A DNA stretch of 64,000 nt from Amoeboaphelidium protococcarum X5 (GCA_023515725.1 JALDTO010000057.1:325575-389574); one strand, 5' to 3'. Positions 1-8,255 are shown, counted from the stretch's first letter. The notes: a model not told the origin generated them from the letters alone. Program-made: numbers and translations.

Positions 1-681
1 GGCCCCAAATACTAAAAGAGCAGCCAGATAAGTTAAAGACACCAAAGACCTTCCCTTCAATGCTGAATTTAAACTTAATAACATCATGGTAACATTAAAA
101 GCATACATTCCACCACGTCCAAACTCAATAATATTCATTGGGTTAAGTAAGTACAATGCACAAACGACAATATGAATATTTTTCGATTAGAAAACTTATT
201 GAATTGTCATCTCTGGCGTCAATATCCTGCGTAAAGTCTTTATCTCGTCCACCATCTTGGAATCTAGAGGAAGATAATTTTTAACCTTAACATCTGGCGA
301 TTGCGGTTGCTTATCATCAAATGTATATTCTTTATCTTTCTCACCGGCACACAGTGCAGTATCATAAGCTATCAAATAATTGAAATCTATCCTATAAATC
401 CACAGGTACTACTTGGCAATAGCGAATAGCAGATAAGCATTGAGAATATGGCTAATCATAAGAAGAATCATAATGATGTAGTGTAATTAAGCAGACTCAC
501 CAAGAGACAACAGCATACCAAGAGATCTAATAACCATAGAACTGTACTGACATCCCTCATGTGTGACAAAACACTCTAGAAACATTTTCATCTCCAATGA
601 CTGATTCTAATTATGCAAATAAGCAATACATCTCAATGCAATACCAAGACAGAATATTGAAAGTAGCTTCAATTACGCCAT
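1..681 (-). CDS. GPI transamidase subunit PIG-U/Gab1-like membrane protein (5' part; runs off window start)
   Basis: ATG at 681, open to position 1 with TAR=Gln; hydrophobic segments and motif ALYLLNPMNII...FNVTMMLLSLNSALKG resembling PIG-U. Confidence 0.6.
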
Positions 682-1274
682 TGCTGTATAAAACTTGAAG
701 AGATCGCGTACTCTTCTACAATCGTTAAGAAGAAGAAGCGCAAAGATTCAGTTGAAACTATGAGGAATTACACCAAAAAGTGTTGTTTCAAACGCGCCAA
801 GAAACGTTTTATTATACAGTATTGAGTTTTGTAATTGGCGTGAACTTATTTAGAGTTTGTGTAAAAAAATTTATACCAGTACCTTGTCAATGGTTATAAT
901 GCACTTGAGAGAGATCAGGGACAATACTGGAATCAGTTCTATACTATGAAGCAAAATACTGTATCACTATATAAACAAAGAACAGTCTTGTAAACAAAGA
1001 CATTTTACAGAGACAGAGAGAGAGAAACTCTAAAGAAAGCTTACTGTACGCGCTTCAACGCCATCCTGTAAGCAAATGAGATCAATCTCTTGCTCCAAAC
1101 GACTTAGAGAGTGAGTGAGAAAGCGAATGAGCGAGCGAACAACCATTACAATAGAATAAAGGGCGGCAAGCGAGAAACGTCGTTGTCGCCTTGATTTCCC
1201 TTTCTTTCCGGTGCGAATTCAAACGGACAGAAAATGGCAAATTATATGGTTATACGCCTAGTCGGGAAAAAATT

Positions 1275-1307
1275 ATATCGCTGCCGACCGCAGGTCGGTT
1301 GCGATAT
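1275..1307. repeat. Hairpin ATATCGC-tg-CCGACC-GCA-GGTCGG-tt-GCGATAT
   Basis: Two perfect stems (7 and 6 bp) around a 3-nt loop, ~85 bp past the transposase stop. Confidence 0.85.
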
Positions 1308-1390
1308 TTTATACGGATTTCAAGGGATGAGTAAGAAGAAACCGAAGATCTGCGATCATATCCACTCAATTACTCAATCAGTTCATAAAA

Positions 1391-4300
1391 TCACGTCTAT
1401 TTCAACTTTCTCTCTCTTTCTACACGCTTTCTGAACTTTTTATAGAGACTTGTACGCATTTACAACAAAGAATCGTCTAACTAACTTGATGCATCGCATC
1501 TTTTGGAAGAATGGCCTTCAGTACATTAATTGGAATCAGCCATCAATCTTGGCTTCCAGCAGATTTTGCAGACTTGTTTCACTGATTCGCTTCTCAAATT
1601 ACTGTCCAACTCTTCTTCATTGACAAATCCGTTTTCAGGTGTCAACACGTCGTCGCCGAATCTCTAACGCAGCAGTTCAGTCAAATTGACAGCCTCAGTC
1701 ATTGTGACAGGCCCAGTATCAGCTTAAATGATATCGACGGTATGATAAGTTAATTAGTTAAAGGTCGGCTGTTCGTTGATGTCTACATTCTCTCCAAAAT
1801 TGTCAACTCTAGGAATATCATCACCATCAGGCAGACCCAAAACTGGATTGAACAAAGTGCCCATATCCAGATTGGTGAAGTAAGCATCGTCTATACTATC
1901 AACTAATCTCTAAATATCCTAATCTGCAGTAGCAAGCAAATCATTGACACTCTAAACAGACTGAGTAGCAGGACAGATGCAGCTCAAATTGTTCAATGAA
2001 GTCTGTGTTTCTACAGATACATGTTCAACTACTTAGACAGTTTACTCAGTAGACACCTAATGCAACTACGGAATTTCGAACGGAATATGCAATGCTGTTG
2101 GGTCAGTCAAATGATTTTATAGCTGTCTGAACTGGGCCTTAAATGGATCAATCGCGTATTTGCATGCCAACTTACGTTCCACAATATCTTCAAAACTCTT
2201 CAAATGGCTTGGTGCTTTAAAAGAGTATTCTGATAACAAATCATCAACTTCAGACTAATTTGAGCAGGCGGCAATCTTGTTATAAACCAGAAAATTCCAT
2301 CGATCAGCCATTTACTCATAATCTACTTACTTATCATCACCGTTTTTCTTGGTGCAATATTGTTCAAACAGTGACATGAATAAGATGAGCTCTTTTTGGG
2401 AGGAGACGGGACGTGATATGACATTGAATGCAAACTTAGAGATCATATCATCAGAGTTCAGCTTGATGGGCTCAGTAGATATATCACTCTAATCCATATC
2501 AATAACAGTCAAATCAACTTCAACTGGATCGGCCAGTGCATCAATCAGTTCTTCATCAAAGCCACCTTCGCATTCCATCATCAGCTACTAGTCAGAAATG
2601 TTCTTTAGATCAAGAGATTTGCCCAAATACTTACTACAGCCAAATTTAACAGATTTTGAGAATTCAGATACCTGTGGAATGGTCAGATTCTCAAAAACAG
2701 GACACTTGAAGTATTTCGCATTGTCGACATACAACTGCTTAATTTAGCTCAGCACTAGTGGGTTGTAAATATGAAAATCCGGAGTCAGCCCACAGGTCAG
2801 TGCCGCATCTTGATTTCTTCTGTAGACAAAGTCCATGAGCATAACATTATATAGCTCAGGAGAGATAGACTTTGCTTAAAACGCATTGTACAACATCATG
2901 TGATATCCTTCTTATTGGCTGGTACCTCTAAAACACTTGAACTACTTAAAAGATCCATCATCTCCAGGCTTTAATTGCAAGTACATGTCAACACCAGGAG
3001 GATCTGATAAACAGCCATCTTTGGCGTGCTTCAGATTACGCTCGTGATGTTTCATTACTTGATCATCAATGAACTCACTGTTAACCGCTCTGAACATTTA
3101 GACCACCTGATCAATTCTATTCGACAAAATATCCGCAGGTGGAACAAATCTTCTCACTTTACCATTACGCAATAGATAGCTTCTCTTGATCTGATCCATT
3201 TACTTATCTGATACTCCACGCTGCTGTAATACTGACTTCACATCTTGCATGTCTTCTTCAGAACAGATGAATATCGCGTCGCGGAGGTTGGAGGCAAAGA
3301 GAGAGTATAGAGGATGTTTCTTCTTAACAGGATACCGCTCCATGAAATGAAATATATCCAAGAGTACTCGCTATCCTTATCCAGTAGCTGACAGAGATTC
3401 AAACATATCAGAGAGAAATGCTCTTTCAGTGCAGCAGAGATCTGTGAAGAAAGCCTGAGGACCCTCTTCATCTTTGGCCGCATAGCGCTGCTTCAAGACT
3501 TCAAATTCACCAGTCAACTCTTTCAGACTTTTGTTTGGCACAAGCCAGAATCCAGCTACTTGGCCATACTCATTCACCAAGGAGTATAATCCCTCAAATA
3601 TCTACTGAGACTTAGACACAGGCACCTTGGCTGCTTTGAAAGTGTGATCACCGCTCAAAACTTTGCCAGTAACTTGCGCGACAGCGGCGTTCTTCAGATC
3701 ATACACATCCATTTGGCTCTTATAATAGAATTTCTTTAAAACAGTAGTGGATGGAATGGATACGTTATACTAATCTTTGTCGCTGAATTCTGGAAATGGG
3801 TCAATCAGTGCAGGCAAAGCTTAAAACATTAAAGTCTTCTATGGGTTCCTTCTAACAAATGTTGATGCGGACAGATAGGCAAGATGTCTTGATTAATGCT
3901 AGTTGTTGAACAGCTCATCCAACATCTTTACAAACTCATTAAAAGAGACTCCTCGCATGATCATCCTATCCATTAATTAAATCAATTAGTTGTCCAGGAT
4001 CGTGTTGTCAATCACCGTACACGGCAACTATTGCTAAACATGAGGAGGAAGATGCTGCAAAGTATCTGGATCTATTCCACGAAACTCCTTACCAGTCCTG
4101 CCACCAGTACCACAGTGACACAGATTGCATTTGTACCTCTTGAACATGATGTAATACGACTGACCAATGCCTATTACTTTTCGAGGCCCTACTGCTGACC
4201 AGCCTGCTACCTTAACGTGACCATCCACAACGCCATGAACTGGACAAGGCATGTGGCGAACACCAAGATGATGGAAAAACACTTCTGGCGTCCAGAATAT

Positions 4301-4954
4301 AACTTTCTCCTTCACAAAATCCTAGCTCTCCATATAATCTGAGACTAATAAAGGATTAGGCGGATAAATCCAGATATCACGCCAGGACAGAGGATTCAGC
4401 GGCTTGCAATCGCAGACACCATGACACCTTGACGACGTTGCATTGCATTGATAGCCGCGCGAACCTGTTCCTTTAATGGCGTAGTCAATCTCATCAGTGT
4501 ACTTGACTATAAATGCGGTGGAGGGATGACTTCTCCAATTCTAATCTTTCTACTCAATCACTAACGTGGCATTAACTTGATCATCATTTTCGACTGAGGA
4601 GGTAGTATCATGATGAGCATTAATATCATTTGTTTCAGGCGTCTGATCAGACGCGGATTGATGAACTGGTACATTAGCGAAAGAGTCCACTGATTGTAAG
4701 GATGCTCCAGTCAGCCAACTTGACAAAGTATTCGCGGAACCTGCGATACTGTTGTTCTTCTTTAACTATTCCAAACAAAATTTAGTGTGCGGCTTCTTAT
4801 TAGATGGGAAATGAAGATTTTTACATATCGGGCACTTCCAAGTCTTACCAGGATGGATCGGTGCATTTTCTGCGTCTTCTCTCTGCCTCTTGATCTTCCT
4901 TGCACCAGGAGGAGGGACATAATTGCTGATGGACATTCCATTGGTAGTGTTCAT
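1391..4954 (-). CDS. DUF6729-like / Mutator-type (C/DxxH) RNase H-fold transposase, ~1187 aa, with N-terminal CCHC zinc finger
   Basis: Track fragments 4766-4960, 4034-4315 and 3377-3580 share one frame and join through TAR codons; motifs PRKVIGIGQSYYIMFKRYKC, LSGDHTFK, FFTDLCC, LLDIFHFMER, RGTSQQEGYH; TGA at 1391-1393. Confidence 0.75.
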
Positions 4955-5176
4955 TCTCAAAATCTCTCTTAACAGTGAAGTTCGCTCTACAAAAGTAATG
5001 AAATAAGTATTGAGATTGGAAATTAAATCATACTATATTTTGACTACGACTTTCTTTTAGGCTTCTCACGGCACTTTTTATTTTGAATGCTGATATCAGA
5101 GTCAGATATAGGCAACTGTATATCTGATACTGAAGCTGATATTTCTGAAACAGTGTTGGTCGCACGCGCAGTTTAT

Positions 5177-5249
5177 GTAGCGACATTGTCAACAACATTG
5201 TCAGCGACATTCGTTTGATCGTGTTAGCGACAATTTTGTAGCGACATTT
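5177..5249 (+). repeat. Direct-repeat array (AGCGACA x4 plus one degenerate unit) upstream of the transposase
   Basis: gtAGCGACAttg, tcAaCaACAttg, tcAGCGACAttc, ttAGCGACAatt, gtAGCGACAttt. Confidence 0.8.
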
Positions 5250-5521
5250 GGCTTAAGAGTAGTAAGGTACCCGAAAATTTGGTGAATGCGCATTCAGTTA
5301 TTGCCCAACGTTGCATTATCTGATTTCTAATTAGCATTACTCTTACTATTTGTGCTATTCTTTATTGCATCTCGAAGAACTCTGCTGATAATTTACTCAA
5401 TTCTGTTTATTGTCTACTTTGGATTTTGGTATTTGTGAACACTTTTACTTATAATAAATTCTAATTAGAACCTACTGTATTCAGACAAGCTCAGAGATCA
5501 ACTCCTAATTAGTGATCAATT

Positions 5522-6085
5522 ATGCCTGCGTATCATTCATAATTTGTTGAAGATTAATAGTTCAAGATGGTGGGAAATATGTGCATTCTACCATTTAGAA
5601 CCAAGGTTCGTGGTCCTGCGCCTCCATTCAGCAGTAATGATCCTAATGATGAAGACATTGTTGAGGAGGGATTGAACTTGTACAGAGCCAACTGCTTTTA
5701 TAAGAATTTTGAAGTCAAGAATGGAAGTGACAGACTGTTGATCTATGTGCTGCTGTACATTGGTGAGTGTCTGACCAAGATTGCTTCCCTATCCACCAAG
5801 GGTGATCAGTGGCCGTCTGTAAATGAGGCGCAGAAGCACTTGACCACTCTGTCCACCAACGCTAATCTGGTGTCTATGCTGCCATCTGATGCATCTTTCC
5901 CTCTTTCTGGAATGTACGAGAAGCCTACCAACAAGAATGACATTGACTTTCTGCGTTCCTACCTGACTCAGCTTCGTGGTGAAATCGGCACCAGATTGAT
6001 TGAGAGAATCTATGTGAACGGCAAGCCTAGCAAGTGGTGGATGTGTTTCCAGAAGAGAAAGTTTATGGGCAAAAGCTTGAGCTGA
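5522..6085 (+). CDS. ARPC3: Arp2/3 complex subunit 3 (p21-Arc / Arc18)
   Basis: MPAYHS(Q)F...ILPFRTKVRGPAP, LYRANCFYKNFEVK, KPSKWWMCFQKRKFMGKSL; the conserved N-terminus needs TAA/TAG read as sense. Confidence 0.97.
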
Positions 6086-6302
6086 TTAAAAAGACTTGAA
6101 AGTCATGTGTCTTTTTCAGTAATAAGATTTTATTCTTTAATGTATTTTGAGTTGAGAATGGTTTACTTTCTTATTTCTATTATCTTTGATACCACGGTGC
6201 GTGAGACTTTGAGCTTTAACTCTTTCACCGCGACGAGAATTCCTCCGCGTTGTTTCATCCATCCCAAAAGATCTCCTTTTAATTGGAATAAATAGCACCA
6301 TC

Positions 6303-8255
6303 ATGTCATTTAAAACTAAAGCGATATTCGTCGCACTATTATGCTTGGTTAGTATTTACTTATCGCTGGTTTCTATCCGTCTCAAGATTGGACATTTCAA
6401 TATTTTAAATGGTGGAAGACTGTACGGGTAACATAGTTCTGACAGCGATATTAGAGCATTGGAGTTAAACCACGTTAGCGATGTTGAAACGTTGTTTACG
6501 GAACTGAGTAACGAAATATAGTAAAAGATGAGTGGTTATAGATAGAGAGTTTAACGATTAATTTCAAGCCTGTAATCCAGAGAGGATCAGTTAAATATTA
6601 CATTGAAGAAACCGCCTGTGATAGTATTTGGCACTGCTGGTAGTGGTACGCGCATTGCAAATAAAGTCATTCGCGCAATGAACGTTGCCGTCTTCACAGA
6701 GATCGTGAATAGATAAGATGATTCGCTCGTTGTCATTCAGCTGGTGAAAGAGACAGCGATGTTTTGCTGCGGAAACTCTTCGCTGTTTCATCACTTTGCG
6801 GAGAGGACTAACAGTAATGGTACATTCGTATACGAAGTGGAGGACGTGGATCCTATTCTGCGCGATTAGATTACAAAGGCTCTACGGTTGGCATTTCGCA
6901 TTATACAACATGAAGCTTATTTAAAATCTGGGCGTTCTCTGGATGTTAGTTGGGGTATCAAAGAGCCTCAATTGATCTATCTCATTCCATTTATTCTTGA
7001 TCTCCACCCTGATGCTATTCTTGTTCATACAATCCGGGATGGACGAGATGCTGTCCTCAGTAAGTAGCAGAAGATGAGATATCAGCAGATGTACCTGGAT
7101 AAAATTTACCGATCTGGAGATCTAATGGCGACCGCGTAGTTATGGTAGCGAATAAATCTTGATGCTCGGTCCATGGCTCTTAGACATCAATTGCGCACAA
7201 ATTACTTATTGGTCCGGTTGGAGGATCTATGCTATGATCATCGGAGGTAGATGACATTGTCTAATATCGAGAGGCTATTATAATAATTTGGAATATTGAG
7301 AACGTATAATACTAAAGCTTCGGATTCTCAAGATATTGATTAATCGAGATGCAATATGGGCAAGTGGCTCAACTCTTCGCTCCAACTGAGTTCTAATGTA
7401 TATAAATCTATTTGGAAGACTTTGCTTGAATTTGGATATTAAGTATTATAAACTGATACATCTTCTGAATAAATCTTGTCAAAAGCTGGACTCCCATATT
7501 GGCCTCAGAACTCTACTGTGATTATAACGGCTGTATCCCACGATTATCTTGATCTATGCAACACCTTTATGGATAAAATTGAATATCATTCCAATTAATA
7601 AAGGCTTTAGATGCTGGTACTTAATTTGGATCATGAATCTGCGGAAGTGAATAAAATATCCTTAAGATCGCGGCACCATATCCAACATGTAAGTATTGAT
7701 AGTATGAAGTAGAAGAAGGATATCTGGAAATGGAGACTTGAAATGGCATCGACGTTAATAGATTAAGGGAATGATGTTGTGCTCAATGACTTGGACGCTA
7801 TATGGAATGTGAATATCGTCCAGTATTTTGAGTAGGATAAGTTTGGTGGGTACGACCTCATTGCTGGGCAAGGAAGATTTCCGTATGAGTTGAAGTCGTT
7901 GTGGGGATTTACTGCTTGCATGGGTATGGTGTATATAAGATCATCTACGCAGTCATCTACTCTGCTTCATCTGACTCTTCGGTATTTAAAGATGTTCCCA
8001 GATGATTAAAAAGCTTTCAATCGGGCTCTCTGGTAAATGTCTGATGGTTGGATCGAAACGAAGGCTGGATATCAGTCAGTATCTGACAGCAGTACAGGAA
8101 TTAAAGCTTTAGTGTTGCACCACGATTCTCTTCCTCGATTCTGTCCCTCATCTAAAGTCATTGAGTAATACCCCAAAGCTATTGCATTTCATTGTTATAC
8201 TCCCAAGAATGGTTCTAAAAAGATGGCCATACTAAGATAGATGGATATCATATGA
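6303..8255 (+). CDS. Type II membrane protein: sulfotransferase domain fused to nucleotide-diphospho-sugar transferase (GT77-like) domain
   Basis: N-terminal TM; PVIVFGTAGSGTR, WGIKEP, VHTIRDGRD (PAPS-binding motifs); C-terminal DVVLNDLDAIW, GRFP, ACMGMVY, DDQKAFN; absent from the ORF track because of TAR codons. Confidence 0.75.

Follow-up and report, generated by a model that had tools for sequence, protein, structure and literature searches.

A very recently active DNA transposon, probably of the Dada superfamily, in the code-6 genome of Amoeboaphelidium protococcarum

Introduction

A 64,000-nucleotide stretch of the genome of Amoeboaphelidium protococcarum X5 (GCA_023515725.1, JALDTO010000057.1:325575-389574), referred to here as the window and numbered from its first letter, carries near its left end a gene with the motifs of a DDE-type transposase, set between two unlike ends of which one recalls the hairpin end of a Helitron. 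The question raised by this locus is to what kind of mobile element, if any, the gene belongs. An earlier note, made from the sequence alone, had proposed either a poorly described transposon class with a hairpin-defined end or a DDE gene captured in a non-autonomous Helitron. The evidence assembled here indicates, with high probability, that the element is a copy of a Dada-superfamily DNA transposon which is autonomous and has been active very recently, in an Amoeboaphelidium host that uses genetic code 6.

The Dada superfamily has been treated by Kojima & Jurka 2013 (PMC3706591) and Kojima 2022 (PMC8869645). It is defined as a distant relative of MuDR/IS256, placed near IS256, MuDR, hAT and P, with a DDE transposase that contains a DxxH motif and two fingers, CCCC at the N-terminus and CCHC at the C-terminus, the last being listed for all Dada transposases (PMC3706591). 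The elements have no terminal inverted repeats (TIRs) and carry, as in Dada-U6/U1, sub-terminal inverted repeats located at equal distances from the target-site duplication (TSD); the TSDs are 6-7 bp long, and many families insert into small nuclear RNA (snRNA) or transfer RNA (tRNA) genes, a habit that is not stated to be universal (PMC3706591). In fungi, Dada has been recorded only as a sparse family (PMC5751038). A literature search found no paper on Amoeboaphelidium transposons and no Dada described from this aphelid-like host, and a literature text search on DUF6729, the domain found in the protein, returned nothing.

Results

Genomic copies define a 4037-bp element

Positions 1-7000 of the window were searched against its own 23.6-Mb assembly. 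The search yielded 15 genomic matches at about 100% identity, all beginning at 1235-1236; 13 of them reach 5272-5280, and the other two end at 5259 and 5216. Additional copies were found at 93% (L016) and 91% identity, together with fragments at contig ends. In every copy the flanks diverge exactly before GGCAAATT (1236) and after GGTACCC (5272), which replaces the ends proposed earlier, 1258 and 5250. The gene lies on the minus strand, hence 5272 is the 5' end of the element and 1236 its 3' end. The limits of the copy in the window are the following:

1236..5272, minus strand: whole element, 4037 bp, the plus strand running GGCAAATT...GGTACCC; placed by copy boundaries and flank divergence
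1230..1235, no strand: left flanking duplication GAAAAT, with an identical hexamer past the right end
5273..5278, no strand: right flanking duplication GAAAAT, pairing with 1230..1235

Eight of the 13 full copies are identical over the 4037 bp and the remaining ones differ at 1-7 positions; the 1187-codon frame described below is intact in all 13. Perfect 8-bp TSDs, each of a different sequence, flank nine of the 13 full copies and also the diverged copy L016 (10 in total), and one further full copy shows a 7/8 match. Inspection of the 8-bp TSDs by eye showed position 2 to be A-rich and otherwise no clear target consensus. When the flanks of all copies were compared with the element by blastn, no nested or tandem remnants were detected, and for this reason a right-end-like sequence located to the left of copy L002 is not considered significant.

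An empty homeologous or paralogous locus was found on contig C249, where both flanks are joined without the element (flank identity 84-92%). Assembled contigs of X7, another sample with the same organism label, were also compared. One X7 contig joins position 1203 to position 5274 across the insertion point, with a right flank 97.6% alike, and represents an empty site, so that the insertion is polymorphic between the samples. The k-mer depth of the element was roughly 15-25 times that of its flanks in the source sample and about 3-4 times in X7, these being rough values of depth and not of copy number. Two other organism labels also include runs with the element sequence, which is found in metagenomes of biofilm and sediment as well.

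Both comparisons had been suggested in the earlier note: the genome-wide alignment of flanks defined the 4037-bp copies with their 8-bp TSDs, and the search for an empty site in a related strain led to the X7 contig with joined flanks. The element is a real, multi-copy transposon that has amplified recently and is probably active.

Some irregularities were seen among the copies. In L013, L021 and L022 (contig C205, about 175.7-182.8 kb and 266 kb) the TSD halves AAGAAGTC and AAGAAGTT are swapped, and the left flank of copy L015 matches the right flank of L008 with 4 extra nt. Such patterns could have come about by recombination between copies that are identical over 4 kb, by homeologous insertions, or by joins made across repeats in the assembly. 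In sample X8, which has another organism label, a variant of the element was observed with a 47-bp deletion (4987-5033) in the 5' untranslated part and about 20 substitutions.

The transposase gene is intact and is read in code 6

Translation of the minus strand with table 6 gave an open frame of 1224 codons, corresponding to 1187 amino acids from the first ATG (4954 down to 1391). The 1187-codon frame contains 19 TAA and 24 TAG codons in frame (43 in total) and stops at TGA; with tables 1 and 11 no frame longer than 95 amino acids was found. About 20 further long code-6 frames fill the 64-kb window, which indicates that code 6, with TAA and TAG read as Gln, is the code of the host. The protein contains the motifs SGDHTFK (D436), FFTDLCC (D505), LLDIFHF (D533/H536) and QQEGYH (E682). 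The open reading frame of about 1187 residues with D..D..DxxH..E motifs, first seen in the earlier note, is thus intact at 1391-4954 and open only under code 6.

A six-frame Pfam search that read through stops matched PF20499 (DUF6729) at 3809-4375 with 40.3 bits (E 2.5e-9), above the cut-off, and Pfam searches of ten stop-free pieces gave only a sub-threshold DUF6729 match (E 0.09). The match above the cut-off bears out the designation of the locus as a DUF6729-like DDE element, apparently an autonomous DDE/DxxH transposon. The gene and the parts of its product are located as follows, all on the minus strand:

1391..4954: gene for the transposase, with 1187 codons read in code 6 and then the TGA stop, no intron needed
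3809..4375: DUF6729 domain, amino acids 194-382, from the PF20499 match
4118-4246: zinc-finger motif C237/H240/C276/C279 inside the DUF6729 domain, from Cys columns in homologs
2909..3649: RNase H-like catalytic core, from conserved columns and the fold of a homolog
3647-3649, 3440-3442, 3347-3358 and 2909-2911: catalytic residues D436, D505, D533xxH536 and E682, respectively
1496..1570: C-terminal CCHC-type zinc-finger motif, C1129/C1132/H1148/C1153, conserved in paralog L028

The protein and its relatives resemble Dada transposases

Stop-free pieces of the DUF6729 region from the element and its paralogs were assembled into a profile (A1), which was searched against a library of 1.84 billion proteins and found 1273 of them. 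The window protein is not among the 1.8 billion library representatives. Comparison of the code-6 protein with the proteins of this search, by phmmer and blastp, gave scores of up to 452 bits and 31-39% identity over about 600-900 residues. Named relatives come from Amoeboaphelidium protococcarum, the Mucoromycota, the Basidiomycota, Plasmodiophora and a marine protist transcriptome, and paralog L032 is 99.5% identical to the A. protococcarum protein KAI3630079.1, which points to this species or a near relative as the host.

Across 21 relatives the catalytic residues fall in conserved columns, and a 37-row alignment (A2) shows both Asp columns to be invariant. Their arrangement (D436-D505-E682) is D-69-D-177-E, as compared with spacings of 68 and 176 between D567, D635 and E811 of Dada-U6_DR (PMC3706591). 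As in Dada, a DxxH motif follows the second D, and an N-terminal finger is combined with a C-terminal CCHC finger. The Cys columns of the N-terminal finger are invariant or nearly so in 37 homologs; in the window protein the second ligand is His, which makes this finger CHCC, whereas the first finger of Dada is CCCC. Several blocks, namely DHTFK; LDIFH; ..H..F..LRDA.F; ..VPP; CLSDPHGV/SDPPGI; and RC.RGTN.TE, are collinear with the alignment in Dataset S1 of PMC3706591 as read there, and by reading of the same supplement homolog P0146 is closely like Dada-1_LB in these blocks.

A further trait is shared through the relatives of the element. Of eight long homologs scanned, six have a 3'-5' exonuclease domain (PF01612, DEDDy) between the second D and the DxxH motif, which is where Dada-1/2_LB and Dada-1_ES carry their DEDDy exonuclease (PMC3706591), and an exonuclease match lies about 1 kb downstream of at least nine DUF6729 loci in this genome. 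The domain is absent from the window protein, which has only 10 residues at the corresponding point.

The same genome contains several other DUF6729/Dada-like lineages, most of them with a DEDDy exonuclease about 1 kb downstream and with in-frame TAA/TAG codons, as well as 14 KDZ-type (Kyakuja/Dileera/Zisupton) and five MULE-type (Mutator-like element) transposase loci, also with in-frame TAA/TAG. In a related exonuclease-less family (L035 and L036, contigs C206 and C162) the first 70 or so transposase residues lie in a different frame, due to either a frameshift or a short intron.

The unlike ends share sub-terminal motifs

No conventional TIR was found at the ends of the element, in agreement with the earlier note, and the GC-rich hairpin (1275-1307) and the CTAG tetranucleotide that it had pointed out are both present. 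On the coding strand the stop codon is followed after 84 nt by the palindrome and the palindrome after 13 nt by CTAG, the next base being G. The features of the two ends are:

1274..1308, no strand: 3' sub-terminal palindrome, an inverted GCGAYAWW pair around an inner CCGACC/GGTCGG stem
1258..1261, minus strand: CTAG, internal, 22 nt from the real 3' terminus, with no role shown
5179..5248, plus strand: 5' sub-terminal array of four direct AGCGACAWT copies, from a motif scan
5096..5133, no strand: second palindrome, in the 5' untranslated part, 15-nt arms with 87% complementarity

The 3' palindrome (1275-1307) has a 3-nt loop between 15-nt arms that are 87% complementary; its folding energy as single-stranded DNA is -14.7 kcal/mol (z = -3.3), a value matched by 0 of 200 shuffles. 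The folding energy of the second palindrome was not better than that of shuffles (z -0.7).

The two ends are unlike, as had been stated, but some relation between them is visible. When they are compared in inverted register, the terminal 60 nt have 26 positions in common (p about 0.002 by shuffling), and shared by both ends are GG tips and a TNTCGCT motif at nt 41-47. The 5' array holds four of the five exact AGCGACAWT matches of the 64-kb window, in direct order. The shorter form GCGAYAWW, which occurs about 0.5 times per kb in the window, has eight matches in the element, six of them within 95 nt of an end; two of these six are the palindrome arms themselves (minus strand, 1274-1281; plus strand, 1301-1308). 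The outward-pointing copies of the motif (1274-1282, minus; 5226-5234, plus) stop exactly 38 nt from their respective termini. In the copies of 91-93% identity the terminal 100 nt or so are nearly unchanged and the palindrome is kept, with one arm substitution in L017; a single change in the stem among the diverged copies is too little for covariation.

The palindrome is best read as a paired, putative protein-binding site, a counterpart of Dada's sub-terminal inverted repeats, judging from its motif content and position. Ends without TIRs, carrying short sub-terminal inverted motifs equidistant from the tips, are a published hallmark of Dada and the transposase fits that superfamily, so that the poorly described or undescribed system envisaged for the window is not supported.

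A relative of the transposase is predicted to fold like an IS256-family enzyme

The protein chosen for modelling was homolog P0009 (residues 1-640), which has no exonuclease, is 31-39% identical to the element family and was modelled with the 37-row alignment. The model reached a pLDDT of 86.8 and a pTM of 0.84. Its only Foldseek matches at E <= 0.001 were chains of ISCth4 (E 2.7e-5 to 4e-4). VIA-align superposed model residues 67-516 on ISCth4 with a Z of 14.7 (272 residues, rmsd 3.5), whereas retroviral integrase cores scored about 10 and Hermes 9.8. The predicted fold is in line with the position near IS256, MuDR, hAT and P that has been published for Dada.

The match to ISCth4 (PDB 6XGX/6XG8; PMC7780238) also covers the region before the RNase H core, and 8-bp TSDs are found in both systems. 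ISCth4 differs in being a bacterial protein of about 400 amino acids that acts on clear TIRs, and it is only 7-8% identical to the P0009 model.

Insertions occur in varied sites, some of them in open frames

A small-RNA gene was found at one of about 15 insertions: a tRNA-Asp(GTC) gene abuts the 5' end of the element (L003 1-72 / L027 1428-1500), and the 8-bp TSD of this insertion, GAATCTTC, overlaps the first 5 nt of the tRNA. The other junctions showed no further tRNA or Rfam family, and none lies in an snRNA, small nucleolar RNA (snoRNA) or ribosomal RNA gene. A U3 snoRNA gene (RF00012, 51.7 bits; L012 835-1024) is located 476 bp from one copy and is not an insertion target.

The reconstructed empty sites of at least five copies (L005, L010, L011, L012 and L013) fall inside code-6 open frames of 361-677 codons. 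Protein-coding genes have thus been interrupted recently by the element family. The loss of interrupted genes may be buffered by the two diverged genome copies (compare the C249 locus and its flank identity).

Discussion

Weight of the assignment to Dada

Several observations weigh against the assignment of the element to Dada, or are at odds with the description of that superfamily. Membership draws on motif order, spacing and architecture taken from the supplement of a paper, and on relatives that are like Dada-1_LB. The fold comes from P0009, a 31%-identical relative, and not from the window protein itself. The TSD is 8 bp long, as opposed to the 6-7 bp published for Dada, for which an 8-bp TSD was not excludable in the cases of Dada-U1 and Dada-tIA_PMar (PMC3706591). 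The element family does not target small-RNA genes and its target sites are varied, whereas many Dada families go into multicopy small-RNA genes. The duplication around the window copy is atypical, having only 6 bp (GAAAAT, 1230-1235 / 5273-5278), and copies L002, L008 and L017 have no TSD; in this last respect they recall Dada-tL and Dada-tA, some copies of which are reported to have no TSD on one side (PMC3706591; PMC8869645). That the transposase binds the sub-terminal motif is something we only infer. The element also differs from described Dada in that its gene is intron-less and written in code 6. With these points taken into account, membership in Dada is still very probable, and on that assignment the element is a variant within a known superfamily, unusual in its 8-bp TSD, its lack of RNA-gene targeting and its code-6 host.

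Other explanations of the locus

Helitrons insert between A and T without a TSD, end 3' in a hairpin followed by a terminal CTRR, and encode a Rep/helicase. The idea that the element is a rolling-circle transposon of this kind, or a DDE gene captured in a non-autonomous one, with a 3' end made of hairpin and CTAG, came from the GC-rich palindrome 13 nt upstream of CTAG near the 3' end; this palindrome and the lack of TIRs are the whole of the likeness. All copies extend 22 nt past CTAG, to 1236, which leaves the tetranucleotide inside the terminus, and the element is flanked by 8-bp TSDs at varied sites. The palindrome is built from a motif that is repeated at the other end, the enzyme is of the DDE type, and Pfam scans of the stop-free pieces and the homologs, which showed only DUF6729 and the 3'-5' exonuclease, gave no Rep/helicase, no dedicated search for one having been made. 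Capture is contradicted as well by the at least 13 near-identical copies with TSDs of their own. Both forms of the Helitron explanation have a probability close to nil. The same holds for a domesticated, immobile host gene derived from a transposase, like the dDada of carp: its frame would be expected to be intact and adapted to the host code, as it is here, but at least 13 near-identical copies stand at unrelated loci, each between TSDs of its own, samples differ in whether they have the insertion, and the catalytic residues are intact. The single-copy domesticated gene that the earlier note had kept in mind is excluded by copy number and TSDs.

Closer to the evidence are other superfamilies of DDE transposons. 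KDZ elements are Cys-rich, fungal-type DDE transposons, and the TSD of Zisupton is 8 bp; the Cys-rich N-terminal motifs and 8-bp TSDs of the element would suit them. PF18758, however, matches 14 other places in the genome (up to 140 bits) and none of the copies of the element, the long homologs match only DUF6729 with or without the exonuclease in Pfam, and the exonuclease insertion point and D/D/E spacing fit Dada; membership in KDZ is thus highly improbable. A somewhat better case, though still an improbable one, can be made for filing the element as a non-TIR Mutator-like element of the MULE/IS256 lineage. There are non-TIR MULEs whose TSDs measure 8-10 bp, long TIRs are missing from some MULE lineages, and MULE/MuDR elements have in common with the present one a DDE transposase of the C/DxxH class and long TSDs; in addition, the closest solved fold is that of the IS256-family enzyme ISCth4. 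This fold match fits Dada equally well, Dada being a distant relative of MuDR/IS256 (PMC3706591). Moreover, the MULE model PF10551, which matches five other loci in the genome, matches none of the element copies and none of the long homologs, the domain layout of the element is different, DUF6729 coming first and the C-terminus having a CCHC finger, and Dada traits are seen in its zinc fingers, its motif blocks and the exonuclease of its relatives. With hAT (Hermes) the element shares 8-bp TSDs, the C/DxxH motif and short sub-terminal repeats, which in hAT are binding sites; hAT elements differ by their short TIRs and their weaker fold match (Hermes, Z 9.8), and no hAT dimerisation domain was reported in Pfam scans of the long homologs.

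A possible mode of transposition

For the Dada-like element, integration of the DDE type with an 8-bp stagger is established, and the layout of the ends suggests how transposition might proceed. The transposase would probably bind the short sub-terminal GCGAYAWW sites instead of TIRs, these being arranged as four direct copies at the 5' end and as an inverted pair (the 'hairpin') at the 3' end, with one outward copy per end at 38 nt from the tip. Cutting would probably take place at the GG tips, and the 3'-OH ends would be joined to the target with an 8-bp stagger through D436/D505/E682. The donor might then be left by excision (cut-and-paste), or the element might be copied out via an end-to-end junction as in IS256-family elements. 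For ISCth4, copy-out/paste-in via end-to-end junctions with 6-8 bp spacers has been described, with best integration from 6-bp spacers and with 8-bp TSDs (PMC7780238).

Two observations bear on the second route. In one X7 contig the right end (5272) is joined head-to-tail to the left end (1235/1236) via TTGAT (plus T), a spacer of about 6 nt; the depth of this contig is 39, versus 67 for the single-copy empty-site contig, and a pattern search of the present assembly found no head-to-tail junction. This X7 junction could be that of a tandem dimer or of a circle. The other observation concerns copy L002 (C264:1546612-1550654), which has no TSD and whose right end is followed at once by GAAAAT, the hexamer present on both sides of the window copy; a flank may have been carried along in transposition, as for Dada-tA, or the coincidence may be due to chance (about 2-3%). 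Tandems of Dada-U1 with 6 bp between the units, and cases in which Dada-tA took flanking sequence along, are on record in the Dada literature.

By analogy with ISCth4, the lineage of the element, and perhaps Dada generally, might move by an IS256-like copy-out/paste-in via an end-to-end junction, in a circle or a tandem dimer, with a spacer of about 6 nt and an 8-bp stagger, a suggestion we consider unlikely at present. Such a route would explain the asymmetric ends, a burst that led to about 15-25 identical copies with no excision footprints seen, and the X7 junction; it would also explain the apparent travelling of GAAAAT with the right end (L001, L002), the 6-bp Dada tandems and the carried flanks. 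A fixed tandem dimer, or chance, would account for the same hints just as well. If the suggestion were true, a eukaryotic DDE transposon would use a kind of replicative transposition that until now has been documented for bacterial insertion sequences.

Significance

The hairpin-defined new class proposed for this locus turns out to be, in all probability, a known superfamily. To our knowledge, Dada is among the least studied superfamilies of eukaryotic transposons, no experimental mobility has been shown for any Dada, and every Dada family with defined ends has so far been tied to tRNA, snRNA or 5S genes. A transposase full of TAA and TAG codons, such as the present one, escapes standard annotation. 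The copies described here document gene-disrupting transposon activity in an aphelid-like genome.

With base-exact termini, at least 13 intact and near-identical copies, polymorphism between strains, no introns and no target restriction, the element is a candidate for the reconstitution of Dada transposition. With it one could ask by what means a DDE enzyme recognises a pair of ends that are unlike each other, and whether the kinship of Dada with IS256 reaches as far as the transposition pathway.

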